Shown piece after piece: positions 16,001-64,000 of a stretch of 64,000 bases of DNA (position 1 is its first letter; every line of letters starts with the position of its first letter). A program made the translations under genes and the position numbers. Where the stretch lies: NCBI GenBank assembly GCA_044892525.1, contig CM097887.1:92482397-92546396 (forward strand), given 5' to 3'. This DNA comes from Schmidtea polychroa (Eukaryota). Under the pieces are notes generated by a model. That model was not told the DNA's origin, searched no databases, and saw only the letters and a program-made list of their open reading frames with translations.

Positions 16001-18778
16001 CATAAATCGTATCGTATTCAACCTGTTAGATACAGCCATTCTATAAGATGTATTTGAATAATTTTTTATATAATTTCTTCCAAATAACTCATTTAAATTT
16101 TGACATCTCATACAAATTATTAATATTATTATTTCTGCGATAAACACAACGATTTTTGGTTATTTATTTAAAATATTGATGTCTTTGTAATAATAAAATT
16201 TTAAGACATGATTACCCCACAAAAAGTGGAGTCTGAAGTTTGGTAACATTTTAAAGTTCGCAAGATGCAATGGTAACATGCAAAATATATAATATAAGGT
16301 TGCCATGCAAAGAATATAGTACTTTTTGGTTTAATAAGGCATCTATAGAATATTCACCAATTGAACACGAAAAACGTAAACAGAATTTAGACGGTTTAAC
16401 TAATGCGCGATCGAAGCATAAAAAATCATTAACAATTGACAATTAACAAATATTTGACAAATCAATAATTGGAATATATGGTTGCAGAACTCACCACATT
16501 GAATGGTTTTAATATTCACACCATCACAAAAAGCAGTTTTATTCGAGATTTATTAACCAGACGAAACCTGCATTTAGCTAAATAGTCGGTGGATGTAATG
16601 AAATTGGTTCAAGTATTACTATGTTGCAAAAACAGCTAATAAATAAAATTAAAATACAGATTCAAAATAAAAAAGAAATTTAGCCTTACCCTTGAAGAGT
16701 GGGTAAATAAATGCAATCGACGCTACTTTAATACAAACATTAATGATTCTACTGGCGATGTTTATAACTAGGTTTAACAAGAATCTTGAGTAATTCTTCA
16801 GCAGAAACAGCAATAAATTAAAAAAATTTGATTTAAGGTTGACGGATATAATTAAGTGCACTACTGGTAGAGCGGCGTTAATGGTAAAGTTAGGTATCAT
16901 GCTGCCAGCATTAAATGTGTTATAATCAAGCTACTAATTTAGCTGTGATTGATATACTGTGTCAATTCAGTTGTTGTGACTGATGCTAATTATACTTCGA
17001 AATCAGAGAACGAATATTCTAATGAAAATTTGATCACAAGCAATGATGAGAAACCTATTGAAAGTGAAAATAAAATGCAAGACAAAATAAAATGCCATAG
17101 CCGCAAGAAACCTTAAGCGATACACTAGCAACAATTCGAAAAATTTTCAAATTGTTTAAGGAATCTCTTGTTAAAAACAATGCACTACAGAACTACGTTA
17201 GAGATGATCATGACAAGGAATTAAATCTTCTTTTACATTGTCATATGAGATTGCGTTCACTGTGCACCACGAATGGACGCTTTCTTATAATTAGGCGCTC
17301 GTATATTTAAGCCTGTAGCATTTATTAATTGCAAACAATTTGATTATCATCAAACAGCTAGTAAATGTACTTAGGCCAATTAAATTGGCTGTTGAAGCTT
17401 TGAGGCGTCAAGATGCTACCTTCCTAACTATCGAAGATGTTTAAAAGTTTTAATTTGAAACTCGAAAAAGAAAACTTTCACGTTAAGACAGAAATGTTAA
17501 CTGCTCATAAACATCGTATCATTTAACGGAGAGAAAATGACGTAAAGATAATAAACGCGTATAAAATATCAGAGGTTATTTCTAAGAATTCGAAAAATGT
17601 ATTGGATTGTTTAAAATTCAATACAACCAACTTCAACTGAAAGAGAATATATTTTACCTTTAGCTGGTAACGTGATAAGAGTATTGATATTATATGTTTT
17701 ATTAAGAGTTTAATTTTAAAAAAATAATTTTTTAAATTTCAGGTAAATTATGCCTTAAAAGTAATTACCAGCCAAGAACGTTCAATGTTAGTTGAAGTTA
17801 GTTTTATTATTATCTTCATAGATTGTAATTTCCCATTCACTATCCAGCCTTACCTATTGCATATTACGTAATTGAATTTACAACCGAAACAAATCTCTTC
17901 GTGTTACTTTGTTCTGAATAAAATGAATTAATAAAACATTTTACTTTTAAATTGATGATTGTTTTAAGAAAATTTTCCATACTATTCAGAGAAATTTTTA
18001 ATTTTAGAGGAAATCTCGCGTAGCTCGAGATACCCGAGCCCGTTTCACCACAAAGCCCGCGAACTCGAGCATCCGAAAAGCTCAAGCTTCATAAACACTA
18101 TAATAAAGTGCGGTTTTTAAATTTTTAGAAAATGTGAACAAAATGTAGCTAAAGTAAAAATTGTTCAATACGATGTCCAATAAATCCAAAATACATAAAA
18201 TAGCTTATTAGAAACTTAAAAAATCTTCAAATGAATAATTTCACAATACTTACTAACATAGAGTTCAAAGTTCGAATATTTCAGTTGATTGATTAAATTG
18301 TTATGATATTATTACAAAAACCTTAATGATGTATTTGGAAATGAAAACGTAAACAATGCAAATCTCAGCCAAATTGCTGACATCTAATAAGAAATTACAA
18401 AATTGATTTCACGCAGATGAAATGTTATACCATAAACATTATTGACATTCAACACTATTGATAATTCTATTGGTAAATAAAGTCTTAATAATAATTATTT
18501 TTAGAATTTACAGCAATGAAATCAGTAACTTCTAAATAAGTATATTACAAATATCGTAGGTTTTTCTAAATTTAAATTATAAATAACTCTTAATTGTTTC
18601 TTTAAAACAATAATTATGTAAGCATAAAATTCACAATTGCTTCTCATATTTTTAGTTGATGTTTATAATGCCTAATATTTGTCAAGGAATTCAGTGTCCT
18701 ATATCGTAATGCAAAACCATAAAAACATTTTAAGTTAGTTTACAAATCGATAAAACAGCAACATTTACAGAAGTAGTA

Positions 18779-31900: not shown

Positions 31901-34900
31901 ACTTGTGGTTAAAATATTTTTGTTAGCTCAGGTTTTTTAGAAACTTCTATGTTTTTAATAGCTTTCATTGTATACTGACTAGTTTTATAAATAAACTTTA
32001 AAAAATCATTGTATATAAGTGGTTTTGTTTTTTAGATTTTCACTAATTACGTCATAAAAGAATAACCATAAATGTGCAACTATTCGACTGGAATTACGTC
32101 ATTGTTGTTGAATTAATGAAATTTTCAAAAATAGTTTGGTGTATATGACAAATAGATTGAAATATAATTTAGATTTTATAAATATTATTAATTTTTATGG
32201 TAATTTTATATCAAAATATTTCTAACCGTGATTTTCGATGTTTTTAGATTAGTTCTAAAATTATGAACAAATTCAAAGAGGGTCAAATATTTTAACATAC
32301 TAACACGTTTATTTAATTAAATAAATAAATAAATAATGAAAAATAAGTAAGTCAACAATAATATAAATGAATACGAATATCTTACCCATTTCAATGCAAG
32401 TAATACCCAATGACCAAATATCGACTTTGAAGTCATATAATCCACTTTCCATAGCCATAATGACTTCTGGTGCAATCCAAAAAGGAGTACCAACAAACGT
32501 ATTAGCAGGATTTACAAAACTACTTGATCCAAAATCACCCAATTTTACTAACCCCGATTCTGTAAGTAATATATTGCTGGCTTTTATGTCTCTATGGATG
32601 AAATTTTTCTTGTGTAAATAATTCAGCGCTTTCAATACTTCCACAACCACACATCCTATTTCATCTTCTTGAAGTGGTTTCTTAAAAACTATAAAAAGAC
32701 AAATCAAAGCATGGAAAAGTGAAAAAGATGACCATGTTTAAATTGAATTTTTATTATTTATATTAAGCATATATCAAAATCTTCATAAATTTTCAAAATA
32801 TTTTGACATGAAAAAACTAAATTGAACTCAAATGATTGTGTTACGTGGTATAAAATTACTAATGACACATTAAAAGAATCAAATTTTCCGGAAGTTAAAT
32901 TTAACACATTGACTGTCGACTTGATATAGAAAGTCGTTGATGGACTTTGGTGGTCAATGTGTTAAAAACTAGCATTTTAAAAACGGTATATTTTCTAAAT
33001 TTAAATTTTATTTTGTAAATTTACTCATTAATATTCATTTGCAATCATAATTGCATACAAACTGTTCATATTGTAACTGGTTCATTCAGATGTTAAAAAC
33101 GTCGACTAAAAAAAACCACCACTATCAGCGACGGCGAATCAACAAAACACGATCAAATTTGATAAATGAGATGATCAAAAAAGCATTTAGTTACCCAACT
33201 ATTAATTATTCTAAAATCACAACAATCTATCGGAAGCACTTTCAATAATATAAAAAGTAAACAAACTTAATAATACAATAAATTTTAGGAGACAGAATAT
33301 TGGACTAATTTGAAATATTAGTCTAAAAAAAATTTAATTTTAGATTTTGTTGAAGTATTTCACGAACTTTGAATGTAGTTGTAAAAAGTTGAATTGTAAA
33401 TAATTGCAGCAAATTCACAATTATACATTGAAATTTTGAACAACATTGTCAATTTGAATAAAACGATTTATCAACAATGACGTACCAAACAAAGAATAGA
33501 AAAAAGACATCGGAGTCTTCTTCTCTTTCAGGATTATCAATTTTTTCAGACAATGTCACACACTAAAACAATTTTCAAAATTAGAAGACATGCTCTCTAT
33601 GCCAGTATTTCTCAGATTTTCTTTCAAGGTATTCTCGTATTCGATACGAGTAGATGAAAAAATTAATTATCAAACTTTATGAAACGCGATATCTATAGTT
33701 TTTGTAGTAGCAATGGTTTTAAAAATGGATAATTTATAATTATTTAACATAATTAAATGCGTTTCTATATATTTTTTATAGACCGGAGATATTCTTTCGC
33801 GAACTTGAACCCCAGTTAAGAAACACTAGTCTGTCATAAATGATAAATTCTGTCAAAGAATAAACTGATGCTCTCAATAATAAATCACAAAATTATGTCT
33901 ATTATCTTAATAAACCTAATGTTATTTAATAATATAAATTAATACATTCCTAAGTCAATTTATAATATATATAGTTTTTCATACCTAATAAATAAAACTA
34001 GAATTGTAAAACTGTTCAATAGAAAAATCATCATTATATAATTAAATTGTTATAATTAAGCTGCAAAACATTACCAAATTAGAAAAATTAAAATTAATTT
34101 GTCTGTAAACTACTTGTTGGTCTAATATATAATAAAGCAAAAATAGCTTTTTCTTGATTTTCTCAGAAATAATGAATATTTACAAGAAATTCAATGCATG
34201 AAAGTGGTGAGAAAATTTTATAAAATGTTGCGTTTTTAGGAAATTATTGAAACATAATCAGGGCACATCCAGACAGCAAAATGCTACTTATGAAAGTGTA
34301 ATTTAGATAGAGAAGTCTTCGTGTATTATTTATTGTATATTTAAATTGTCATTTTAACATCTAATAAAAAAATTAAAATATCATTTATGTAATATTATGG
34401 TCTATATCAATAATGCTCAACCTTCTTTTTCTTCGGGCCACATAGATATATTTGTTAAGTTACGCGGGCCGCAACACTATACTGGTATGACGAAAAAAAT
34501 CATGAGACCCATCCATTTTTTAGGAAACATTTTTGAGATTTTAAAAATTTTAAACTAAAACAGAATAATAACTACCAAGAAACCATCATATCAGTGTATA
34601 TCAAAGATTACCAGTAAGTATGTTGTTTACAGAAATAAGATTCTAAAAAATAACAACGAAATACAAGTTTTTTTTCAAATATTAGGCTCCGATTCCAAGA
34701 ATTACACGATAACCATAAAACAAATTTCTCGAAACGAATCTCAAGATAAACGAAATTTAGAATGCCAGATTTCTTTTTATGTAAATCATGTTCCTTGATA
34801 ATAAATGTGTTAAGGGTCGCACATAAAAGCTTTGCAGGCTACAGGTTGAGTATGGTCGATCTATATGCATATACTAAATTCTACATATTTATATTTTATA

Positions 34901-39466: not shown

Positions 39467-42400
39467 AATTTTATTATTAAACATCTTAATAACTGCCTCG
39501 TACAATTTGGCTAAATATCTATAATAGCTGCCTTTTTGTGTTTATTTTGTAAATTAAATTTCTATAATTTCTTTAATAACTCTAGGTACGTAGTAAATTA
39601 TAAAGTAGTTTATTAATTAAATTAAAATATTTTATAGAAAGAATATTTTATTTTATGAAAGAAACTCAAAAAAAACAAAAAGGAACAGTTATATCTTTAG
39701 AAACTAAAATTGATATTTTGGATCGCCTTAGAAAGATCCACAGAGGTTGTAAGATCATATGATATAAATTAAGCTACAATAGGAGGAATAAAAAAAGATT
39801 GAAAATACCATTAGGCAAATTGTTTTGACTGAACCAGACACCAGGAAAAAAACAACATCATAGATAAGAGATATTGCTATAGAAAGTATGGAGAAGGCAT
39901 TAATGATATGGATTGAAGGTAATTTAATACATGAATTATTAGCTTTACATTTTGTGATCAATTAGATTTTTTTAAAGTTTGTATTTGATATTACTAATTT
40001 ATTATTTATATATTATGTTAAAATTAATGAATTATTAAAAATCAACCGTCAAATAAAGAATTTTATCTAATTTTTTCGGTTTACACGGTTTTTGCGGAAA
40101 CAATTTACGGTTTAAATCCGAGGATGGTGGATAAGGAAAGGCAAATTGATAAAGTAGATAAAATTGTAGAAAAAATGGATACATATTTTCAATCTATTGG
40201 TTTATTTTGAGAAATTCGTGCAGGTATACGTTCAGTTGGTGCTCATAGTTGGTTGTTTCAAGGAATTTATGCCATATGGTAAATATGAATAAAGTACGAT
40301 ATAACTGAAACTGAAATATACTTAAGACGTAATAATATGGATGGTTAATCGTGTTAAAATAGTCAACTTAAATGAAGAATATTTGGAAAACTTTGTAAAC
40401 AAATGAAAGCTCAGGCCTTAAATCTACAATAATAGTTTTCAAAAGATGATGACTTACTACTGTGAATTAAAATAAATATTAATATTTATTAATTAAAATT
40501 TTATTTAAAAGACTTTTAAGAGGATCTGGAAAATGTATACAACGATCTCTATTGAATGATCGATTGATAACTTGATTGAAAGTAGTATCTTGGTTTTCTC
40601 ATTGTTCTATAATCGAGTAATTCTCCCCTAGTGTCCATATGCAGGGCTTTTATTTGGTCTTATTCAACTTATTTTGACGCCAACGTTACTTAAACACTAG
40701 TGATTGTTATTTGTAGTCCTAAATAGTGGTGAGGAAAAATTTCGATTATTATGTAACAATTTAGGCCCAACATGTCTTATATTAATAACCTTTAATGTTA
40801 TTCTCTTATGTTTTTTTGTTTTTCTTAAACCCCAAAGGACTATCACATTTAGACCTAAAAAATAGACGCCCTATTCTTGTCTTAGAACTTACCAATGACA
40901 GAATCAAGGTTTCTTGAATACAAGGGATGGTTTTTGCCATAATTGGAAATGTCCAAAGCATTATTTTTGACTACGGCCAGTAAAAGTCTATCAAGTTTGA
41001 AATATTTGTTTTTCAAAAAAGGAATGCATAAATTATGAACAATTAATGTTCATTATTTCAAAATGTTCAAAAAAACACGTAAGGTAGAGGTGATAATACT
41101 TTGTCCTTTACAAAAAAAAAGAAAGCATTTACGGAATTAATTTAAATTCTTTCTTTTAATTCCCTTCCTCAACAGAAATTTCTTTCCTAATTTTCTTAAT
41201 AAAGTGTAGTCGATTTTATTCAATTGTAACTTGTATTCCAATCGACTTTTGTTTTTTCTGATATATGACAAATTAATTATTTCACAGTGCTACAAAAGAC
41301 TTTCTACAAGAGGATTTCTATGTAACAATGCAAACTTGACGCAGTTAGAACAATAAATTAACCAAAGAGCGTTCTTGATAAAGTATTGACGCATTAAAAT
41401 TGACGTATTAAAATTGACGTTTATATGGGCGGTATTAGAAATATGAACCTTAAACCAACTGTTAAATATATTAACCAATATCAGCTTATAATTTGTGGAA
41501 ATATATCATTAGAAAAACATAACCATACTTTTTCTTCGGTATTATGCATAATTTGCTCGTTTCATTAATAATACTGGAGGCTATTTAAGATTTATATTGG
41601 GAGATTGAGCATCATAACATTAGTATAACTCTCCAATTTCATTCACGAAAAGTTTTAGACTGTGTTGAATTGACTAATGATACTTGGGAACACTTGACGA
41701 GATTAGGGAGGGTATCCAAAGTACGTAGTACAAAGGTCCATAACAAACACAATATGAGAAATTAAACAAATTTAGAAGCAGTTTTATGGCAACCAGATTT
41801 TCTAGTTTTTTTACAAATCGTTAAAACGAGTATGGAGAATAATAATTAACTCTTTAAAAAGATTATAAATTTGTGACAAACAAGAACTAATGATTTCTTT
41901 TTAAAGATTGAAATCTAAATGACAGAGTAACTTAAAAATGTACAATTTTCAAATTCAATAAATATTTACTACTAATAAACAGGATGTAATAATTTCAAAT
42001 CACATTAAATCATTTACAATAAGTTTATTAGGCAATTATCGAATAAATTTGATAGAAAAAAATTAAATGAAGTTTAAAAATTAAAATTCTTAATATATTC
42101 TGATATTTTTATAGTAATCAATAATTTATTTATAACCTCAATAATAAGTTCATGAAAATTAAAAGTAAATAACTAATAAAATAATTAAATTGAAATTAAA
42201 TTTAGTAAAAGCTAATAATTTACCTTCAATTATATCAGATACAGAACCCAAACAATAATCCATCACAATCTAAAATAGCAATGATTTTGGTTGAAAACGT
42301 GAAATAGTTTACTAATGGATTGTTTCCTTTTAAATAATATCCTTTAAATGATATACAGTTTTCATGATTTAACTGTTTCAATAAACATATTTCCCTTTTT

Positions 42401-52658: not shown

Positions 52659-52948
52659 TGTTAGAAGCTATAACATTTAATTCTTCTGTCATCAAAATAA
52701 ATTACTAAGACTATTAAATCCAAAATTATATTTCATTAAATCTGATTATATAAACAAATATTCTTGGGACATTTTCTAAATTTTAATTTCAACCAAATAT
52801 CAACATACCATCGCATTCATACTTGAATTTCAATTTTATTAAAAATTATTTTATTTTAAAATTTCAATTATCATTTCAATTTTAATATCTTAAAATAATT
52901 TAAGTTTCAATTAAAATTTTACAAATTTTAATCATGAACTAATTTAAT

Positions 52949-55900
52949 TTAGTATTTTAATTTTAACTCCTCACATCCCCCTTTTTTAAAATGTTTGATC
53001 TTCTCAACATTTCTGACTACCATCTTCCCATTTTGATCTTTAAGTAAGTAGCTCCGTTCATGTATTTTCTTTATCACTTTGTACGGCCCTTCCCACCTTG
53101 CATCGTCTTTATTTCGAATTTCTTGTTTGATCAAAACCACATCTTCTATTTCAAAATCTCTCACTGTTTTGCTTATTTTTGGTTTTAGTGTTTTATCCTC
53201 TATTCTCTTTTCCATATCTTCTCTATTTATTTCTTTATTCGAGTACCATTTCATTCTGTCGATTTTCCTCCCAAATATAATCTCTGCTGGGCTTACTCCC
53301 GTTGTTTTTTGAACTGTTGCATTTAAAGTATATTCTATTTCTGGCACTATATCAGCCCAGTTTTTCCTTCCTCCTTCATTCAATGACGCGTTAATATACT
53401 CTCTGATTGTTCTGAATTGTCTTTCAATAATACCATTCGTGTTATGGTGATATGGGCTTGAGAAAATTAATTCAATGCCAGCTGCCTTTGCTAGTTCTTT
53501 TATACTTCTTGCTTCAAAGTTCTTCCCACAATCTACATGAAGTTCTTTTGGAGCTCCAAACTTTAATATCCATTTATTTAATAACGTCTCACTAATTGTT
53601 TTTTCGTCTTGCTTGTTTATGGCCGTTAATGAGATGTATTTACTATAGTGGTCAATGATTCCGCAAATATATTTCTTTTTGTTGAACGTTTCTTTCAATG
53701 GCCCACATATATCCATATATATCTTCTCGAATGGTTCTGTACTCTTTATTGTTTGAGTTTCCTCCTTTGTCTTGGTTGTTATCGTTTTCATTTTCTGACA
53801 TCTTTCGCAGTTCTCAATTACCTTTTTTACTTCCGTTGCTAAATTTTCCATGTCGCAGTTATTCTGGATATATTTCGTTACTTTCTGTGCACCTGCATGG
53901 CACAGCAATACGTGTACTTCTTTTATCATCCTCTGTCTATTATCTGACGGTATCCATATTTTACCTTGCTTAGTTAGTACCGTGTTGTTTTCCATTATGA
54001 ACTTACAATCTTTATTTTCTAACTTATTCTTTATTTCTTGGACCTCCATATTGTCATTTTGCCACTTGTTATATCCGCCTTCTGCTGTTACTGTTAATAT
54101 TCTGGTTTTAATTTTGCCGGTTTTTGGGTCTTCGTGTTCCATCATACACTGTACACATGTTCCGCATGTTTTCCTGGATAGCATATCCGCGTTTGTATGG
54201 CTTGTTCCTTTCCTGTATTCCATTTTAATATCCAGGCTGCTTAAATAGTTGATCCATGTCTGGAATTGAGCAGTTATTGGTTTCTTCGTTGTTACCATAA
54301 ACGTAATAGCTTTATGGTCCGTTCTCAGTACGAATCTCTTACCATATAAGTAATGGTTGAAATGTTTACAAAAATAGTATATTGCCAATAATTCTTTTCT
54401 GGTAATGCAGTATCCTTTTTCATGGCTGCTCATCGCATGTGAACCATATGCAATGACATGTTCATGTCCTTTTTCATCCTTTTGCGAAAGAACTGCTCCA
54501 ATAGTATCGAAGCTCGCGTCTGTGTCTAATATAAATTCTTTTCTGAAATCTGGAAATACCAATACTGGGGCGGTTATCAATGCTTCTTTCATTTCCCCGA
54601 AAGCCTTTTCACACATCTCTGTCCATCTTATTTTCTCATTGTTTTTTCCGCATATGCTTTCTAGTGCTCTTGCCTTCTTTGCATAGTCTTTTATGAACCG
54701 TCGATAATAGTTACAGATACCCAGAAAGCTCCTCAGATTCTTTACACATTTTGGCTTTTGAAATGATTGTATTGCTTCTATCTTAGTATTATCTGTTTGT
54801 ATGCCGTCTTTATTTATTATGTGTCCCAGAAACTTCACTTCTTTTCTAAATATTTGACATTTTTCGGGGTTCAATCTTAGTCCTGCTGTTGCGATCTCCC
54901 CTAGGACTTTTTCAAATATGTTATAATGGTCTTCTTCTGTCTTTGTGAATATTAGGATGTCGTCTAAATATACCATCACTCCATCTTTCCACAAATCTTT
55001 CAATACTTTCGTCATTAATTCTTGAAATGTTCCTGGTGCCGCTGCAATACCGAACGGCATCCTGTTAAAACAGAACTGTCCTTCTTTTGTTGAGAATGCT
55101 GTTTTCTCTTGAGATTCTTTATCTAACTTCACTTGGTAATAAGCATTTTCCAAGTCGATTGAGCTAAAATATCTGGATCCGTGTAGGATGTCTAAAATTT
55201 CATCTACATTTGGCATTGGAAATGCTTGTCTTTCTGTTATCTTGTTTAATTGTCTGAAGTCTAGACAAAGCCTGATGTCTTTTTTCTCTTTCTTCCATAC
55301 ACAAACTAAAGGTGTGTTCCACGGTGAATTACACTTCCTAATTATTCCGTTGTTTTCTAGATTTTTTATTGCTTCCTCAATCTTGTCTTCCAAATTTATT
55401 GGCTGACGTCTCGGTTTAATCATTATTGGCTTTCCTTTCGTGATGATCTTATGTTTTATCAGATTGGTACACCCAATGTCCCATTTATCTGCCATAAAAA
55501 CATTCTTGTTTGCCTGAAATATTTCTAACAGTCTCTTATTTCCGGTAACCTTTAAAACGTCGATGGCATGACGTAATCTTTCTTCATCTGTTATAATCCG
55601 CCCAAATCTAGCTTCTATTTCGCAAATGAAATCACTACGTTTTTCATGTTCTTCTATTATACATTTCAATTCTATACCAAATAACCTTTGTAGTTCTACT
55701 CCTCCAATAATTTCTGGTATTAAATTCTTTACTATAATGAATGTTAAATTTCTTTCAATACTGCCCATTTTAACATTGATGCTTATTTTACCCATAGTTT
55801 CTAATCTACTGTTGTTTGCACATCTTAGCGATTCCCTTGTTTCTAATATTTCGATATTTTCTAATCGATCAATTACAGATTTAGCCATCACATTAATTCG

Positions 55901-56293
55901 CGCTCCTGTATCCGATAAACAATCTACTTTCCGCCCTTGGATATCCAGTGTTGTACTCGGTCTACCTTGCATTATATTATATGTTATTACTGGACTTTTT
56001 TGTTCTTCTACTGACAAAATATTCTGTTCTCTAGTATCTTCTACAATTTCATTAATACACACGTCTCCATTTTTCTTGAGGAATTTGTAAATTTTCTCTA
56101 TAGTTCTTTCCTCGTGTTTTACTAATTCATTTACTTTACACTCCTCTTTAAATTTTTTCTGAATTTCCTTATCATTCGACTTTTTGATTTCTACACTACT
56201 ATTATTATTAATATCACGTTCAAAAACACTGCAATCTTTATCAATCATACAATCATCATACATACTTAAATTACACATACCGTTAGCATTCAT
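52949..56293 (-). CDS. Pol polyprotein (protease-RT-RNase H-integrase), open; reached by -1 frameshift from gag
   Basis: DTG protease, YLDD RT, LDTDAS RNase H, H-H-C-C and DDE integrase, GPY motif; Ty3 domain order. Confidence 0.96.
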   Translation of the reverse strand: MNANGMCNLSMYDDCMIDKDCSVFERDINNNSSVEIKKSNDKEIQKKFKEECKVNELVKHEERTIEKIYKFLKKNGDVCINEIVEDTREQNILSVEEQKSPVITYNIMQGRPSTTLDIQGRKVDCLSDTGARINVMAKSVIDRLENIEILETRESLRCANNSRLETMGKISINVKMGSIERNLTFIIVKNLIPEIIGGVELQRLFGIELKCIIEEHEKRSDFICEIEARFGRIITDEERLRHAIDVLKVTGNKRLLEIFQANKNVFMADKWDIGCTNLIKHKIITKGKPIMIKPRRQPINLEDKIEEAIKNLENNGIIRKCNSPWNTPLVCVWKKEKKDIRLCLDFRQLNKITERQAFPMPNVDEILDILHGSRYFSSIDLENAYYQVKLDKESQEKTAFSTKEGQFCFNRMPFGIAAAPGTFQELMTKVLKDLWKDGVMVYLDDILIFTKTEEDHYNIFEKVLGEIATAGLRLNPEKCQIFRKEVKFLGHIINKDGIQTDNTKIEAIQSFQKPKCVKNLRSFLGICNYYRRFIKDYAKKARALESICGKNNEKIRWTEMCEKAFGEMKEALITAPVLVFPDFRKEFILDTDASFDTIGAVLSQKDEKGHEHVIAYGSHAMSSHEKGYCITRKELLAIYYFCKHFNHYLYGKRFVLRTDHKAITFMVTTKKPITAQFQTWINYLSSLDIKMEYRKGTSHTNADMLSRKTCGTCVQCMMEHEDPKTGKIKTRILTVTAEGGYNKWQNDNMEVQEIKNKLENKDCKFIMENNTVLTKQGKIWIPSDNRQRMIKEVHVLLCHAGAQKVTKYIQNNCDMENLATEVKKVIENCERCQKMKTITTKTKEETQTIKSTEPFEKIYMDICGPLKETFNKKKYICGIIDHYSKYISLTAINKQDEKTISETLLNKWILKFGAPKELHVDCGKNFEARSIKELAKAAGIELIFSSPYHHNTNGIIERQFRTIREYINASLNEGGRKNWADIVPEIEYTLNATVQKTTGVSPAEIIFGRKIDRMKWYSNKEINREDMEKRIEDKTLKPKISKTVRDFEIEDVVLIKQEIRNKDDARWEGPYKVIKKIHERSYLLKDQNGKMVVRNVEKIKHFKKGGCEELKLKY

Positions 56294-56316
56294 TCTTTGG
56301 TTGAAATCAATATTAC

Positions 56317-57428
56317 TTAGTAAATTGCTCCGATCAATGTCCCGTTTGACGGAGCGTGCTCGTTTGGGTCATTCTCCCTGTTATACTCGTCTGGCTGGCT
56401 TGACTGTTTTGTATTCATCATCTCATCATCAGACTCGATAGCTGCAATATCTTTTCTGTTATATTGTTGATTTCCCCATTGTCTTTGATGTACGTTCCTT
56501 GATCTTCCCTTTGTTGATAGGTATTTCTTTGAATTCTTCCTCCTGACATCTTCCTTTGGTCTCGATCTCTTCCTTGATTTCGTCTTTCCATATTTGTGTA
56601 GCACTCTCTTTCTTTGTGTCCTCGTGCATTGCATCTATGACATTTGATTGTTGGGCATTCTCTTCGTATGTGACCTTCAACACCACATGCATAACATTGA
56701 AATCTTCTTTTTATATTACATTCTCTGCTACTGTGTCCCGGTTTTTGACACGTCCAGCATTCTATCACTTTAATTCTTGTCTCTGGTTTCCATTCGTTGA
56801 TTTTTCTCTTCGTGGCTCCAACTTGTACTACATCTCTATAAGTTCTTCCCCCAGTTGTAGGTCGTATTGATCTCACCGTGTTTACTTGTTCAATAACCTT
56901 GTTAACTTTTTCTATCTTCTTTATAGTTTCTTTAATTTGTTCCGCCGTTTTGAGATCTTTCATTTCGATTTCTTTCCTGACTTCTTTATCTTTTACACAA
57001 TGTGTCAATAAAAATTTCTGAATTTCTTCCTCATTCCAAGTGTGTGAGGCCAATTTTTTAGTCATTTTTGATATTTTCTCTATAAATATTTCCGCTGATT
57101 CGTTACCTTGCTCGTAGTTCAAGGCTTCTCTTAAGTCATCAATCAATGACGTTGGTCGATGAAAAGCTGCTCTTAATTTCTGTTCAACGGTTTTACCTTC
57201 TGCGGTTTCATATTCTTCAATCAAAGTCCTGTCCAGAAGTGTAATAACTAGTACCATTTGGGTCTTCACTGGTGTCTTCGTTATTTCAAAGAACCTCTGA
57301 CATTCTTTGATAAATAATTCGAGGTCATCTCCTCTGTGGAATTTTTCTGGAAGTAATCTTCCAATAAGCAGATCCGTTGGAATGGTCGCCATGTTAGAAG
57401 CTATAACATTTAATTCTTCTGTCATCAA
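56317..57428 (-). CDS. Gag with CCHC zinc knuckles; 1-nt frameshift near 56515
   Basis: CWTCQKPGHSSREC, CYACGVEGHIRREC, CHRCNARGHKEREC; the natural C-terminus continues in frame 56317-56634. Confidence 0.9.
56327..56368 (-). other. -1 programmed ribosomal frameshift signal
   Basis: C CCA AAC heptamer (56368-62) in gag frame, 6-nt spacer, stem GCTCCGTCAA/TTGA(T)CGGAGC with 8-nt loop; the pol frame opens exactly at the heptamer. Confidence 0.8.
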
Positions 57429-57707
57429 AATAAATTACTAAGACTATTAAATCCAAAATTATATTTCATTAAATCTGATTATATAAACAAATATTCTTGG
57501 GACATTTTCTAAATTTTAATTTCAACCAAATATCAACATACCATCGCATTCATACTTGAATTTCAATTTTATTAAAAATTATTTTATTTTAAAATTTCAA
57601 TTATCATTTCAATTTTAATATCTTAAAATAATTTAAGTTTCAATTAAAATTTTACAAATTTTAATCATGAACTAATTTAATTTAGTATTTTAATTTTAAC
57701 TCCTCAC

Positions 57708-58412: not shown

Positions 58413-59223
58413 CCTTTATATGGTATTGTGGACATTTTTGTCAAAATTATTTTTTAAATGTAAATAACGCCTGAATACAAACTTAAGTTTGAAAAATTTT
58501 TCAATGTAAATTCTTCTTTTTTTTAAATTAATAATTTGCCGCTTAATTTATTTTATGGTGTCATACAGATTTCTAGGTATAAAAAAATGCACGTTGACCG
58601 TAATGTGGACAAAAATGTCTATAATGAAATTCCTGTTCAAACATGATTTGTTTTTACCTGTTTACAACAAATATATGATTTTTGATTTGACATATGTTTG
58701 CAACAAACATATGTTATTTGTTCTAAATTATTATTTTGTGGGTTTTTTTGTGCATTTATATGCTATTCGTCAAGTAACTTGTACTGACCTTTGCTGCGTC
58801 TAATTAGAATTTGTTATTTACACATTGCATTGATACGATTACGAAGTTTGAGTCTAATATATTATATTTCAACTTATTTTTCTTCAAAAAAAAATCAAAA
58901 TTATGACACATAAAAATCTAACCGATGAAGAAATTCAAGATTTAGTTTTTAGTGGTAGCGAAGCTGATCCATCTGATGATGACCATGTTTTTATTGATAG
59001 CGAGTATTCGAGTTCTGATCAGGAAAGTTTAGGCGATGTAGAGCCAAATAGTTTTTTATCGAAAGATAAGACAGTATTGTGGCATCAAAAACCTGTTAGC
59101 ACCAATTTGGGTCGCAATCGAGCAGAAAATATATTGAATATGACTCCGGGAATTACTAGGTATGCAGCTAGCCGAATCACTGATATAAACAGTGCATCCA
59201 TGATATTTTTTCCGAAAGCTATT
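58413..59223 (+). mobile_element. piggyBac 5' portion, truncated by an LTR insertion
   Basis: TTAA (58409-12) then CCTTTATATGGTATTGTGGACATTTTTGTC, with inverted GTGGACAAAAATGTC at ~58605; ORF 58903-59229 has an acidic N-terminus and W..KP....GR..AENIL..TPG.TRYA (PGBD4-like). Confidence 0.75.
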
Positions 59224-59816
59224 TATTAGCCACAGAGCTGCGGGTATTAATAGAATCCATAACAAAAACACGTTTATTATAAAAACACAAATATTATTAA
59301 AACAAATTATAACGTTAATTTGTTTGAGGAGTTTCTAAAAATAATAATTAATGTATAAGTAAGGATTTCAACATACAATCAAACATGCACAACATCATAC
59401 CATTATTTAAATACAAATTACAAAACGCCTCACACCCCCCCCCCTTTTTGAAAACCTTTAACCACTCAATATTTCTCGTGACGGAACTTCCATTTTCCAA
59501 TTTTATTTCATAACTTCGATCATGAATCTTTTTAGTAATCACACCTGGACCCATGTATCTGTTATCACCTTTATTTCGAACATTTACTTTGATCAATACG
59601 TAATCTCCAATTTGAAATTCGCGATTTGTCGCCTGATTGATTTTTTCTTCTTTCACAATCTCTGAGAACCATTCACTATAAATCTTTTTCCCAAACACCA
59701 TTTCAACTGGAGTCTTCCTAATTGTTTTTTGAAAAGTTGAATTCAACATAAACTGAACTTCGGGAAGAATATCTACCCATGATTTATGTCTTTTATCTTT
59801 GAGTGTTATCTATATT
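59224..59816 (-). mobile_element. 3' part of a second Ty3 family: integrase C-terminus, PPT and 211-bp 3' LTR (59224-59434)
   Basis: SWVDILPEVQFMLNST...TPVEMVFG...YMGPG...VFKKGGGCE; PPT AAAAAGGGGGGGGGG followed by TGTGAGG as in the intact element; coding sequence stops abruptly at 59816. Confidence 0.85.
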
Positions 59817-59927
59817 AGTAGATGGATTGGGCACCGCTGGCACAGGGCACCGCTAGCACAGTACCCCCCCCCCCCCCCCCCGTCGTCATATTTTTCAAAA
59901 ATATGCTAAGTCTAAAAGTACATTTTT

Positions 59928-60549
59928 TTAAACAAAGACATATGACTCATCCAGGTCATTGAAACAAAGACCATGACTCGTAGTATGACTCATCAAATTT
60001 CTCAAGGTCATTTAAACAAAGACCATGACTCATCCTATGACTCATCAAGGTCATTTTCAAGGTCGTATGACGCATAGTATGACTCATCAAGGGCAAAAAT
60101 TTTTTTCAGGGTCATTTAAACAAAGACCATGACTCATCAAGGGCATTTTCAAGGGCATATGACTCATACTATGACTCATATGACCTTGAAAATTTTTCCA
60201 AGGTCATATGACTCAGAGTATGACTCATCAAAAATTTCAAGGTCATTTAAACAAAGACCATGACTCATAATATGACTCATCAAGGTCATTTTCAAGGTCA
60301 TCTGCCTCATCCTATGACTCATCAAGGTCATTTTCAAGGTCATATGAGCTATAGTATGAGTCATATGACCTTGAAAAAATTTTCTCAAGGTCATATGTCT
60401 CATACCATGACTCATCAACAATTTTCAAGGTCATTTTCAAGGTTTTCTGAGTCATGGTATGACTCATCAAGGTCATTTTCAAGGTCGCATGACTCATCCA
60501 AGGTCATTCCCAAGGTCATCTGAGTCATCGCGATGAGTCATCAAGGTCA
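59928..60549. promoter_or_regulatory. Dense modular array of transcription-factor-type sites
   Basis: By eye about 20 TGA(C/G)TCA, about 16 CAAGGTCA and 5 AAACAAAGAC modules in shuffled order and both orientations. Confidence 0.7.
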
Positions 60550-60683
60550 TATTATTATTTTTAAAAAATATTATTATTTTTATTATTATTTTTAAAAATA
60601 TTATTATTTTATTTTTAATTTTTTCAAAGTTCCCGCCAACGAAAATTAATAATCGATAGCTCATTTTAAAGCTCAATCCAAGA

Positions 60684-60831
60684 NNNNNNNNNNNNNNNNN
60701 NNNNNNNNNNNNNNNNNNNNNNNNNNNNNNNNNNNNNNNNNNNNNNNNNNNNNNNNNNNNNNNNNNNNNNNNNNNNNNNNNNNNNNNNNNNNNNNNNNNN
60801 NNNNNNNNNNNNNNNNNNNNNNNNNNNNNNN
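60684..60831. other. Assembly gap (148 N)
   Basis: Run of N. Confidence 1.
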
Positions 60832-60932
60832 CTATATACTCCTAGTCTATCCGACAAAATATTTTTCCCCCTATGGGTAATGCTCACAAAGGTACTGGTC
60901 ACGCTCAACAAATCAACAAAACATACATTTAT

Positions 60933-61430
60933 TTAAACAATAAAATAATGTAAAATTAACAAAGGTAAACTAAATATTGATGTACTATTCGCAGCAATAT
61001 TGTTTGAAATTGGTAACGTAGAATTGATTTTCAGAGATTCTATTGATCCTTTGATTGTTTGAATTTCTCTTAATAATAATTCAATCTTTTTTAACAAATA
61101 ATCATGCTTCTTATCAATTATTTTCATATTCATTTTATTTTCAACAATAGAGTTATTGAAAACCTTAATATGATCAATCAATTCAAATTTTATATTTTGT
61201 ATATATTCAAATGATAGTTCATAACTGTTTTCTAAATTCTCCAATCTTTGAGATATTATTTTTCCTGGATGCTTTGACCATTTTGGTTTGTCGAGAATAT
61301 ATAAAATATCCATCAACTTGGCTGTATTCGGACAAACACATATTGATTTATTAAAAGACTCCACTGTTATTGTTGTATTGTGTGAGCACACACTCGTTAT
61401 AATAATTAGCAATATGAATATAGTTTTCAT
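60933..61430 (-). CDS. 165-aa secreted/surface protein: signal peptide, coiled coil, hydrophobic (GPI-like) tail
   Basis: MKTIFILLIIITSVCS signal; several N-x-S/T sites; heptad region; tail NIAANSTSIFSLPLLILHYFIV; AATAAA at the stop. Confidence 0.75.
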   Translation of the reverse strand: MKTIFILLIIITSVCSHNTTITVESFNKSICVCPNTAKLMDILYILDKPKWSKHPGKIISQRLENLENSYELSFEYIQNIKFELIDHIKVFNNSIVENKMNMKIIDKKHDYLLKKIELLLREIQTIKGSIESLKINSTLPISNNIAANSTSIFSLPLLILHYFIV

Positions 61431-61535
61431 GGTGTATCAAATCAAAACCTTTCTTTTACATTTATAGTCTATCAACCAATCAAAATCATCCGGTATTAGT
61501 ATAAATAAAACATCATATTTTAAATTATTGTAAAA

Positions 61536-62056
61536 ATGTCTCAATTTATGGAAAATCTTTTAAGAGAACTCGTCAACAGGAATATTATGGAAAGCCTATG
61601 TTTCCTGGTCGATCGGACCGAAAAGATTATAGAAGGTAATCACATTGATTATGAAGATGTGATCAATTCTGATTGTCTCGAAACCAAAAAATTCTATTTT
61701 AATAGAATTTTTAACTGTCTATGCGACGATCAGATGAAGTGGACCCGAATACTAGTAGGGTTCGCTTATATGAAAATAATAATCCAAAGAAGTCTATGGG
61801 ACTCAGAGCACTATTATCAGTGGTCTCAAGAAGTAATACTTTTATAATTTATATTTTATTAATATTTATTTTCTAGATAATCAAGTCAAAGTTTCAGCCA
61901 TGGATTGAAGCCAATGGCGGATGGGGAGTACTCAATCAACTCGCCAGAAATGCAAAAGAAATAGACGATCAGAAAAGAAAATTTAAAAACTATGTAAAAC
62001 TTGCAACAGGTGTTGCTATTTTGTATATTTTAACCAGATTTTTAAATAAAAATTAA
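61536..62056 (+). CDS. Bcl-2 family protein, 158 aa, two exons (61536-61832, 61877-62056)
   Basis: 44-nt GT-AG intron, phase 0; BH1-like LCDDQMKWTRILVGFAY; BH2 FQPWIEANGGWGVL; C-terminal anchor LATGVAILYILTRFLNKN*. Confidence 0.88.
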
Positions 62057-62139
62057 TATAGTTATTTTTGTTTGATTTTTAAATAAATTTTTAAATAACA
62101 TTTTAAATAAATTTACAAACACTAATTAACTAAGATTTA

Positions 62140-62549
62140 TTAATTAAGACATTCGCTGTCGTCATCTCCACATTTCATTATATTTTCAACGACATGATCA
62201 ATACAATCATTCGTAATATTATCTTTAGATTCATCTTTAGGTTCCTCTATAGGTTCCTCTATAGGTTCCTCTATAGGTTCCTCTATAGGTTCATCTATAG
62301 GTTCATAGATTTCCTCATCAATTTCTTGAGTATCGGTTTCTTGAGTTTCTTCCTCATCATCAAATCCTGTATCTTGACTCTCAACTAACCAGCCGATATT
62401 TAAGGCATTTGTAATAGATAATATGTCCTCAATTTTCACACCAGATATTTCTGCTAACTTTTCCAACAAAAAGTTGATTAAAAATTCTAAATAATAAATA
62501 ATTCGGTAATTAATTAATCATGTTAACCTTTTTCTGTAGTCATTTTCAT
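62140..62549 (-). CDS. 122-aa acidic protein with EEPI repeats, two exons (62549-62528, 62486-62140)
   Basis: The listed ORF has no ATG; a 41-nt GT-AG intron joins MKMTTEK|EFLINFLLEKL in frame; 12-bp tandem repeat ATAGAGGAACCT. Confidence 0.72.
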
Positions 62550-62675
62550 CACTTTAAAACTATATTATAATTTTGTTTATAGATTTTCTTTGTTAAATTT
62601 GCATGTCATTTGCATTTATGTTGCAATTAATAAAGAGAAAAACAAATCTGACTAATGCATTTATTAAATATAACA

Positions 62676-63086
62676 TTAAAATATTTGTGAAAGTCTAGCA
62701 GACATAATTTTCCAAATAGGAGAATATACATCATTATTATCAACTTTATATCCCTGGATTGCTATTGTTATATACCAATTTTCATTTTCTTTGAAACTGA
62801 TTTCATCAAAAGCATCATAAAATCTTGCATATCTATTGTTGAACCATGCATGTTGATTACACGATAGATTCGAATCTATCCGTTTAAAAACATCATCAAT
62901 AGTTTTGACATCAATCATTGAAAGCGTGCCGGATAAGAATTCGAATTTAGTTGGAATTAGCTTGACTGGTGCAACCAATTTCATATTGATTTCTTCTTTC
63001 AAAAAATACATTTTGTAGTTGTGGAACATTTGAACTGGTTGTACCATTTCTTTAGGTTTTTCGGTGCTTGAAATTTTCTTGGTCAT
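62676..63086 (-). CDS. 136-aa protein, possible OB-fold ssDNA-binding protein
   Basis: Clean ATG-TAA ORF with TATAAAA 35 nt upstream; beta-rich C-terminus WYITIAIQGYKV...YSPIWKI recalls viral SSB strands (by eye only). Confidence 0.6.
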   Translation of the reverse strand: MTKKISSTEKPKEMVQPVQMFHNYKMYFLKEEINMKLVAPVKLIPTKFEFLSGTLSMIDVKTIDDVFKRIDSNLSCNQHAWFNNRYARFYDAFDEISFKENENWYITIAIQGYKVDNNDVYSPIWKIMSARLSQIF

Positions 63087-63362
63087 CGTGAATAATGAAT
63101 AAATTTAAATGTTACAGGGTTTTTATACCTTTGACTCATGCCTATCAACCAATCAGATTACAGTATGTCTTTGTTTAAATTTGCATTTCATTTGCATTAA
63201 TGCTGCATTTATGTTCTATTAATGTACATATTATTAATGTTTTATTATTACTATCATTATTTCTATTATTATTATTTCTAATTCTATTATTTATATTATT
63301 ATTATTATTATTATTTCTAATTCTACTTCAAATATAAAAAAAAACTCAATACAAAAATACAT

Positions 63363-63777
63363 TTATTGATATTTATCTACAATCCGGGAGTAGTGAAACC
63401 TTCTCAGAGTTTTCACTAACTCCCATTCCACATATCGCCGATATCGATCGGCACAGCAGGAACATCCGAACATACATTGATATTCCGGCTTCATTTCTTT
63501 CACTGTTCTGTTAATCTTTATATCCCATAAGAATTGATGGAATACCTCCATAATTCTTATTTGGGTTGAGTAGAAAATGAGGTCCGGAATTATTTCTGCT
63601 TCTCGATCCTTGATGATTTCAATAATTTGAGGATAATAGTATTTGAGTGTATTGATCATTACATCTAAATATTTTTCTAAAATAATAAATAGTAAATAAT
63701 GTGAAAATAAAAATTTAAAATTTACCGTAATCGTCGATATCCTTCATGAGGTTTGCAGAGCTTGGTAATTTGTACAT
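63363..63777 (-). CDS. 121-aa hypothetical protein with CxxxCxCC motif, two exons (63777-63726, 63676-63363)
   Basis: 49-nt GT-AG intron joins MYKLPSSANLMKDIDDY|EKYLDV in frame to the listed ORF; three CCAAT boxes at 63830-63870. Confidence 0.75.
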
Positions 63778-63851
63778 GATGTTGAAAAAAATGAATTCTA
63801 AACAAAAACCGTTTGTTTAAATCAATCAATAACCAATAAGAAATTAACCAA

Positions 63852-64000
63852 TTAGAAATCGACCAATGAAATTATCTCATTTCGAACATTGTCAACAAAT
63901 TCTCTATACTCCAAATTTCTCAACCCCAACATGACAACCTTTCCACTAGCAAACACGTTGACACATATAGGGTTATATTTTAATAGTCTTAGTGCCGGAA
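63852..64000 (-). CDS. C-terminal 49+ codons of a TATA-binding-protein (TBP)-fold protein; 5' part outside the window
   Basis: (x)PALRLLKYNPICVNVFASGKVVMLGLRN aligns to the TBP repeat [29 protein letters not shown]; not in the ORF track (too short). Confidence 0.72.
   Translation of the reverse strand, partial: PALRLLKYNPICVNVFASGKVVMLGLRNLEYREFVDNVRNEIISLVDF

Follow-up and report, generated by a model that had tools for sequence, protein, structure and literature searches.

Positions 59817-64000 of the 64,000-nucleotide stretch of Schmidtea polychroa DNA analyzed here (contig CM097887.1; the whole stretch is hereafter called the window) very probably form one terminal arm of an endogenous virus of the Maverick/Polinton class (adintovirus-like, MELD), integrated into an older Ty3-type retrotransposon. 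A first-pass annotation of the window had proposed the arm of an integrated Polinton/Maverick-like virus, and the comparative data largely support this: homologues of the orphan gene g4 and of a TATA-binding protein (TBP)-like gene, a gene order shared with the related locus L009, terminal inverted repeats (TIRs) of the same layout at the related locus L005, and contigs carrying a capsid gene all point in this direction. Within the arm, an outermost segment and a subterminal tandem array are followed by an assembly gap and then by six genes, among which are a probable Bcl-2 family member (g2) and the 3' end of the TBP-like gene (g6).

Gene content and ties to a Maverick lineage

To the right of the gap, 3.07 kb accommodate six genes, of which five are complete and the sixth is interrupted where the window stops. 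The compactness described in the first-pass annotation is confirmed, with spacers of 105, 83, 132, 276, and 74 bp between the genes and a gene coverage of 78% of this stretch. All five complete genes are intact from ATG to TAA. Five of the six are oriented outward, to the element end, and the Bcl-2-like gene g2 is oriented inward.

The gene cut by the window end, g6 (63852-64000, minus strand), comprises the last 49 codons and the stop of the TBP-like gene. By tblastn it matches L009 (50% identity, E 2e-11), L005 (52%, E 2e-14), L017 (67%), and six further loci. The full-length TBP-like protein of L009 scores 66.1 bits against PF00352, and the g6 fragment alone, with 46 amino acids (aa), scores 15.1 bits at a cut-off of 22.9. 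Since g6 is 50 to 67% identical to the C-termini of the lineage and the L009 protein reaches 66.1 bits, g6 can be assigned to the TBP repeat domain by transitivity. Pfam recognizes one TBP repeat in the 151-aa L009 protein, and a second motif of the SGK/TG type is visible by eye in exon 1 of the L005 gene. Judged from these sequence matches, the TBP-like gene belongs to the conserved accessory genes of the whole lineage (nine loci). A plus-strand ATG at 63931, considered as a possible start codon for the sixth gene, is ruled out by the tblastn match, which identifies the minus-strand end of the TBP-like gene. Of the cargo named in the first-pass annotation, the TBP-like gene thus stands, at 63852-64000 and not at g4, and the Bcl-2 assignment can be kept as probable, with a PF00452 match below threshold.

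The orphan gene g4 (62676-63086, minus strand; 136 aa, intact), with a conserved IQGYK...SPIWKI signature, is an accessory gene typical of this Maverick group. Both arms of L009/L010 encode homologues (193 aa, E 8e-10, and 163 aa, E 3e-4); L018 has one at 38% identity (E 2e-15), and L005 has one as well (E 4e-8). Searches with g4 in IMG/VR and in JGI metagenome contigs gave no matches, and a word-index search of 5.8 billion proteins with g4 and with exon 1 of g2 returned only their own clusters. Because g6 matches nine loci and g4 matches four, all of them belonging to the lineage that carries Maverick core genes, the arm is tied to this lineage. The order of genes is shared as well: the right arm of L009 reads TBP, g4-like gene, 32-nt tandem array, contig end, and its outward genes follow the minus-strand order of the window. 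By synteny with L009, the core module would lie past position 64000, with the PolB gene next.

The core genes themselves were found on the related loci. pPolB is present in L005 (PF03175) and as a 1250-aa orthologue in L009 (47 to 51% identical), with YGKTVEN and GDTDS motifs. An rve integrase with a chromo-like tail is encoded in L009 (45.5 bits; cut-off, 32.6), and rve occurs in 21 related loci. L009 also encodes an A32-like ATPase (PF04665, 28.8 bits; cut-off, 22.8), which is present in 13 loci, and on L008 the capsid gene is immediately followed by an adenain gene (PF00770, 28.2 bits; cut-off, 21.3), whose homologues come after the capsid gene in 38 loci. Double jelly-roll (DJR) capsid, adenain, and A32 ATPase are features of the lineage, observed on molecules other than that of the window. 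Both element ends are present in L005, a 28-kb long-read contig in which an element of ~17.4 kb with TIRs of ~250 to 360 nt lies inside other DNA, including a hAT remnant; inspection of the L005 flanks by eye, which was not systematic, revealed no obvious target site duplication (TSD). In L009, the two contig ends are inverted relative to each other along 60 nt. In L005, a 329-aa protein with a MATH/TRAF domain (L005:3952-4941) is encoded next to the TBP gene and adds a further accessory gene of host-signaling type to the lineage.

The capsid family was reached through L004, where the gene beside a g4 paralogue has 92 relatives of ~407 aa. From an alignment of 43 members, AlphaFold2 (AF2) produced a model with a predicted local distance difference test score (pLDDT) of 88.6 and a predicted template modeling score (pTM) of 0.87. 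The DJR capsids of Singapore grouper iridovirus (SGIV), PBCV-1 (Vp54), faustovirus, mavirus, and Sputnik head the Foldseek matches (E 1e-17 to 1e-13; TM ~0.6 to 0.65). In BFVD, the top match is an uncharacterized protein of Cotesia sesamiae bracovirus (entry R9XLG5; 24% identity, E 8e-26), the best match of the family in both structure and sequence, if a remote one, and one that we take to be Maverick-derived; capsids of MELD viruses, adintoviruses, and virophages are matched there as well. The confident model thus points to a DJR major capsid protein. The family is not covered by Pfam, and a search with its alignment against IMG/VR found no relatives.

Copies much closer to the window are found on European Nucleotide Archive (ENA) metagenome contigs. 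L001-L003 encode the exact g4 protein and keep the g5-g4-g3 arrangement at ~98 to 99% nucleotide identity and 2 to 3x coverage. L008 and L061 carry the capsid gene together with adenain at 2.5 to 3.3x coverage, and one sample yielded both L061 and L002; to judge from their sequences, L008, L061, and L004 apparently derive from the window's organism. More distant Maverick-like contigs, with a capsid 65 to 66% identical, are L009/L010 (12.6 kb, 19 to 20x), L011/L012 (15 to 16x), and L014 (10 kb, 51x). These are among the largest and deepest contigs of assemblies with neighboring ENA accessions, possibly from one study. Their deep coverage compared with the 2 to 3x of window-type contigs could be due to a greater number of copies in the genome or to viral DNA in free form.

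Could the region instead be a fast-evolving host gene cluster, or the cargo of a giant Burro-type long terminal repeat (LTR) element, lying beside a Ty3 fragment? Its genes do have cellular-type promoters, introns, and polyadenylation signals, Ty3 elements adjoin it, and g1, g2, g3, and g5 have relatives only in contigs apparently of the same organism, which mark a sublineage. However, the TBP-like gene and g4 stand beside Maverick core genes at no fewer than nine and four independent loci (at least nine and at least four, respectively), and the terminus shares the layout of Maverick TIRs, so that an ordinary host gene cluster was rejected. The Burro-type alternative, which the first-pass annotation had raised, was rejected too, as no LTR pair surrounds the region and the Ty3 integrase frame is interrupted at 59816 and not continued; in addition, introns occur in genes of both strands. 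We therefore regard both variants as very improbable and retain the Maverick-class arm.

Terminus and subterminal array

The arm abuts a second Ty3-type integrase, a C-terminal remnant recognized by translation (59348-~59816, minus strand), which we treat as flank and insertion target outside the element. This remnant has one in-frame stop, is truncated on its upstream side, and gives a weak Pfam match to SH3_Tf2-1. At an offset of 6420 nt it retains 71 to 74% nucleotide similarity to the intact Ty3 copy of the window until ~59807, and the similarity is gone by ~59820; the break is therefore placed at 59816 +/- ~10 nt. A cut of the integrase at 59816 ahead of AGTAGA, as first reported, is thus correct within ~10 nt. 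The 6 bp before 59817 are TATATT, and the sequence after the break starts with AG, a statement that shares the ~10-nt uncertainty of the break itself.

The structured terminal region of the first-pass annotation is confirmed, as a 16-nt repeat, a C18 tract, and an array of ~670 bp with an excess of motifs. The outermost segment (59817-59882, plus strand; boundary +/- ~10 nt) starts with AGTAGA, holds the 16-nt unit GGGCACCGCTnGCACA twice at 59829-59861, and ends with C18 at 59864-59881. It is followed by the subterminal tandem array (59883-60550, plus strand), with periods of 42, 92, and 187 nt and modules that include ATGACTCAT (an AP-1-like palindrome), CAAGGTCAT (similar to a nuclear-receptor half-site), and TTTAAACAAAGAC. 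The transcription-factor consensus patterns TGASTCA, AAGGTCA, CCAAT, and TTTSSCGC were used as regular expressions. The 668 nt of the array hold 20 copies of TGASTCA and 16 of AAGGTCA, whereas the window's other 59.8 kb contains 2 and 3, respectively; because the array grew by duplication, its copies are not independent events. Next to it is an AT-rich 30-nt repeat reaching 60623 and then a short unique stretch (60551-60683, no strand assigned). No inverted copy of 59817-60550 was found within the window, which contains only one element end.

Arrays of this kind are general in the lineage, with sequences that differ among its members. Both TIRs of L005 consist of AGTAG, ~30 nt, poly-C (11 to 12), and a 33-nt tandem array, the same layout as in 59817-60550, and L018:1-127 opens with a perfect 33-nt array. 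In the arrays of L005 (L005:1334-1600 and 18420-18700), the E2F-like pattern TTTSSCGC is present in both TIRs, which account for 13 of its 16 occurrences in the locus. The L009 array (L009:12409-12557) consists of 32-nt units with the CCAAT-like CTGATTGG.

The terminal array would act as a cis-element, either as a cluster of host transcription-factor sites driving the arm genes or as binding sites for replication and integration proteins of the element itself. Many DNA transposons and linear DNA viruses have subterminal repeats to which proteins of their own bind, and it is quite conceivable, if not the account we lean toward, that the array belongs to the element's own machinery (integrase, terminal protein, origin, or packaging) and that its likeness to AP-1 and nuclear-receptor sites is incidental. 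That arrays are found throughout the lineage with different sequences would fit such a role, and the palindromic ATGACTCAT would suit a dimeric element-encoded protein. However, the arrays of the three relatives each show a different motif resembling the site of a cellular factor (TGASTCA/AAGGTCA in the window, TTTSSCGC in L005, and CTGATTGG in L009), and the TGAGTCA, CCAAT, and TTTAAACAAAGAC modules of the window array are found again in the promoter of g4. Both observations favor the enhancer reading, and the two roles are compatible with each other.

Arm genes and transcription signals

The Bcl-2-like gene g2 (61536-62056, plus strand; 158 aa, intact) is composed of two exons (61536-61832 and 61877-62056) separated by a 44-nt phase-0 intron. 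It encodes a BH1-like KWTRILVGF and a BH2-like WIEANGGW motif, and hydrophobic residues 42 to 56 of its 59-aa second exon form a C-terminal tail anchor. The top matches among PDB sequences are cellular Bcl-2 A1/Bfl-1 proteins (E 0.04 to 0.3). On these grounds of sequence, g2 probably belongs to the Bcl-2 family. A second copy of the locus lends support to this assignment: the Bcl-2-like exon on L015 (P0103), a paralogue, matches PF00452 independently (E 8e-4; 20.4 bits at a cut-off of 31.4).

The comparison of L015:1-738 with window positions 61128-61850 reveals a mosaic. Across g1 the two copies are 98% identical at the protein level, and in the promoter 99 of 105 nt are identical; from the start codon of the Bcl-2-like exon onward, protein identity is 63%, with proportions of synonymous (pS) and nonsynonymous (pN) differences of 0.70 and 0.21. 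This pattern fits the exchange of an old, selectively maintained Bcl-2-like cassette between copies, an alternative being that L015 is a chimeric contig of low coverage. If exchange is the cause, the Bcl-2-like gene would act as an exchangeable cassette. The tail-anchored product of g2 may delay the death of an infected or expressing cell.

The gene that shares a divergent promoter with g2 is g1 (60933-61430, minus strand; 165 aa, intact), a candidate for a small secreted or membrane-anchored glycoprotein as judged from its open reading frame (ORF) and hydrophobicity. A signal-like hydrophobic segment (residues 1 to 18) is followed by a coiled-coil-like middle and a hydrophobic C-terminus (residues 151 to 165), with five N-x-S/T sites, and the Pfam matches are weak and to coiled coils only. 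The product may be secreted from the cell or displayed at its surface. Two further genes complete the arm. The acidic g3 (62140-62543, minus strand; 120 aa, intact; exons 62528-62543 and 62140-62486) has 38 D+E among the 109 aa of its large exon, as well as EPIE repeats; in the three independent contigs L001-L003, its intron sequence is conserved and the number of EPIE repeats is variable. The orphan g5 (63363-63777, minus strand; 121 aa, intact; exons 63726-63777 and 63363-63676) is characterized by the Cys cluster CMFGCSCC. Searches of PHROGs, Pfam, and PDB sequences with g1, g3, g4, and g5 gave nothing meaningful.

Splice models were obtained by manual GT-AG reading. Mini-introns are predicted in three arm genes, with 44 nt in g2, 41 nt in g3, and 49 nt in g5, each bounded by GT-AG and restoring the frame. 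AATAAA is located at -4 to +26 nt of the stop in all five complete genes. A TATAWA box is found 36 to 46 nt upstream of the ATG in four complete genes, g5 being the exception, and CCAAT boxes are likewise found in four, with none in g3. The divergent promoter region of g1 and g2 (61431-61535, no strand assigned) contains ATCAACCAATCA, which holds a CCAAT box, and TATAAATA. A 22-nt octamer-like module, AAATTTGCATnTCATTTGCATT, is present upstream of g3 (62595-62616, plus strand) and again upstream of g4 (63177-63198); these are its two matches in the window, a number reached in 0 of 100 shuffles. The g4 promoter (63087-63220, minus strand), which is kept in L001 and L003, combines TATAAAAA, TGAGTCA, the inverted CCAAT box CTGATTGGTTGAT, TTTAAACAAAGAC, and the octamer-like module.

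Because the arm genes use host RNA polymerase II (Pol II) signals and splicing, their expression is expected to be nuclear, and we propose that they are transcribed by host Pol II in the nucleus. The miniature TBP of the element would act on TATA-type promoters, its own or those of the host, and may hinder host initiation.

Continuity of the arm, genomic setting, and known relatives

Several observations weigh against the assignment of 59817-64000 to a Maverick-class virus. Core genes, a second TIR, and a TSD are not visible on the window's molecule, since the window stops 3.2 kb past the gap. Apart from their common layout, the window terminus and the L005 TIR cannot be aligned convincingly at the nucleotide level, and the L005 inverted repeat reaches ~11 to 14 nt outside AGTAG, so the exact element end in the window is uncertain. 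For g2, the two exon pieces match PF00452 collinearly, one at profile positions 12-66 with 17.1 bits and the other at 86-100 with 11.9 bits, both below the cut-off of 31.4, and for g4 the AF2 model is unusable (pLDDT 35) and yields no fold assignment. The near-identity of L001-L003 suggests that they belong to the window's organism, and this near-identity is the sole basis for that attribution. Rearranged copies exist, as L004 shows, and the arm itself may be rearranged or an orphaned remnant. Finally, the gap at 60684-60831 is unbridged in the window, and the element is present in multiple copies in the organism, so a scaffold could join two of them.

The gap deserves particular attention, since a misjoin there would mean that the terminus (59817-60683) and the genes (60832-64000) come from different loci or copies. 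The run of N (no strand assigned) falls within non-coding sequence, with the array on one side and the 3' end of g1 on the other, and the sole ORF that crosses it is made up of X residues. The reading frame across the gap is no issue, because no coding sequence crosses it: g1 ends at 60933 and has an AATAAA at its stop. The gap directly follows repetitive sequence of a multi-copy type, a typical site of scaffolder failure, and several related elements exist in the organism. Against this, the exact 11-mer TTTAAACAAAG occurs four times in the array (59927-60256) and once in the g4 promoter (63169), and nowhere else in the 64 kb, which supports continuity indirectly. Further indirect support is that the terminus and the gene side of the gap are each independently Maverick-like. 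The outward genes, from the TBP-like gene through g5, g4, g3, and g1 toward the terminus, also reproduce the L009 arrangement, and the joining of two copies of one element type would leave the classification unchanged. A misjoin therefore seems improbable to us.

A further possibility concerns the state of the element: the arm may be a solo piece derived from a Maverick, with its core deleted or rearranged and its genes perhaps domesticated by the host. Several observations favor this reading. In L004:1-1711, a g4 paralogue cut to its C-terminal 64 aa adjoins a truncated capsid-module gene on the opposite strand, and the capsid gene is split over two frames by one break. In the window-type capsid cluster, seven of 11 members are below full length, though short members may be cut by contig ends. 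A piece of ~300 bp with pPolB-like and ATPase-like fragments is located at ~40.86 to 41.15 kb of the window, and the arm genes are without exception intact and have promoters of the cellular type. On the other hand, none of the five complete arm genes is disrupted and their signals are conserved, and full-length capsid and adenain genes occur in the same sample at similar coverage. We consider a solo arm unlikely, and read the region as the arm of a Maverick-class virus.

The surroundings of the arm are those of a host gene rich in transposons. The window is AT-rich, with a GC content of 22 to 30% across most of its length. Exons of a protein kinase gene are encoded on its minus strand, the clearest being 32309-32707 (Pkinase, E 9e-33), and are separated by long introns filled with transposons; by reading of its sequence, the kinase is of the STE20/TAO type. 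Together with the Ty3 elements and the Bcl-2-type gene, the kinase suggests an animal genome. At ~40858-41146, the pPolB-like fragment (54 aa on the minus strand, E 4e-7) stands beside the ATPase-like fragment (plus strand, E 0.003); the two are probably left over from a different element of Maverick type inside a host intron. At 52659-57691, the minus strand carries a complete LTR retrotransposon of the Ty3 type, which has an intact gag (56418-57428) with three CCHC knuckles and a pol of 1114 aa (52949-56293). Its two LTRs are 100% identical across the 300 nt that were aligned, so the insertion is very recent. Between both Ty3 copies, an ORF at 58903-59229 encodes 108 aa rich in acidic residues and serine, without a Pfam match, and is possibly the remnant of a transposase N-terminus. 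Among the insertions in the kinase introns, two neighboring ORFs at 5596-7943 encode a hAT-type transposase (DUF4371 and hAT dimerization domain). The block 10000-16000, likewise within the kinase introns, differs from its surroundings in GC content (35 to 42% versus ~25%), has intact ORFs of 536 and 774 aa without Pfam matches, and may be a recently arrived transposon. Scans of the whole window for Rfam families and tRNAs gave no matches.

Adintoviruses have been reported to carry Bcl2 and IAP homologues, and genes of related MELD viruses have been labeled TBP and TRAF (PMC8502044). The first-pass annotation knew of no described Polinton with such a gene combination; in the light of these reports, the combination is less unprecedented than it assumed. 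With adintoviruses and Polintons (PMC8502044) the lineage shares pPolB, rve, the A32/IVa2-like ATPase, adenain, and the DJR capsid, as well as inverted terminal repeats, host integration, and accessory genes of host origin, with both TBP and MATH/TRAF genes in L005. It differs from them in its small capsid protein (~407 aa), which has neither a Pfam family nor an IMG/VR relative, in the conservation of TBP across nine loci, and in that the window sublineage adds a Bcl-2-like protein, a small surface-type protein, and two orphans in one arm. In nematode Mavericks, the cargo consists of a fusogen and genes of the toxin-antidote type (10.1101/2022.07.12.499685). The window element resembles these in being virus-like, in carrying non-core cargo, and in having multiple, partly degraded genomic copies, whereas its cargo is made up of the TBP-like gene, the Bcl-2-like gene, and orphans, and its arm has no envelope protein of fusogen size, g1 measuring 165 aa.

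More distant parallels are offered by mavirus and by the large viruses PBCV-1 (Vp54), SGIV, and faustovirus, which share the DJR capsid fold and, in the case of mavirus, also rve and pPolB. The sequence identity of these capsids is 9 to 12%; they belong to protist or giant viruses and have no arm gene in common with the window. Herpesviruses, poxviruses, and asfarviruses carry vBcl-2, and giant viruses carry TBP-like proteins. By analogy, the arm may follow the same logic of a captured antiapoptotic regulator combined with a TATA-binding factor of its own, in an element that differs in being probably <25 kb and in using host-type introns and host Pol II signals. No sequence relationship of g2 or the TBP-like gene to the Bcl-2 and TBP proteins of large viruses was found, the best Bcl-2 matches being the cellular ones.

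The element class is already known. What is new is an uncatalogued lineage with a small capsid that lacks IMG/VR relatives, together with its lineage-wide TBP, the gene set of this arm, the mosaic Bcl-2-like cassette, and terminal arrays of diverse motifs. As a tentative and still rather doubtful picture, an animal Maverick lineage may be active now, or may have been so recently, as a small nuclear DNA virus with a host-control program of its own: a miniature TBP throughout the lineage, antiapoptotic Bcl-2-like cassettes exchanged between copies by recombination, and terminal repeats evolving as arrays of different cellular transcription-factor sites (AP-1/nuclear-receptor-like in the window, E2F-like in L005, CCAAT-like in L009), by which each sublineage would tune its expression to a different regulatory state of the host.

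Mavericks/Polintons are widespread in animal genomes, yet good descriptions of their accessory genes and of how they are regulated are scarce. In genome annotation, it would be wrong to enter the six arm genes as ordinary host genes. Data on sequence, expression, and distribution alone are enough to follow up the mosaic Bcl-2-like cassette and the motif-diverse arrays. The conserved TBP-like gene, together with the Bcl-2-like gene that one sublineage has added, supports the view of Mavericks as genuine viruses managing transcription and cell death in the host, and not as passive transposons.

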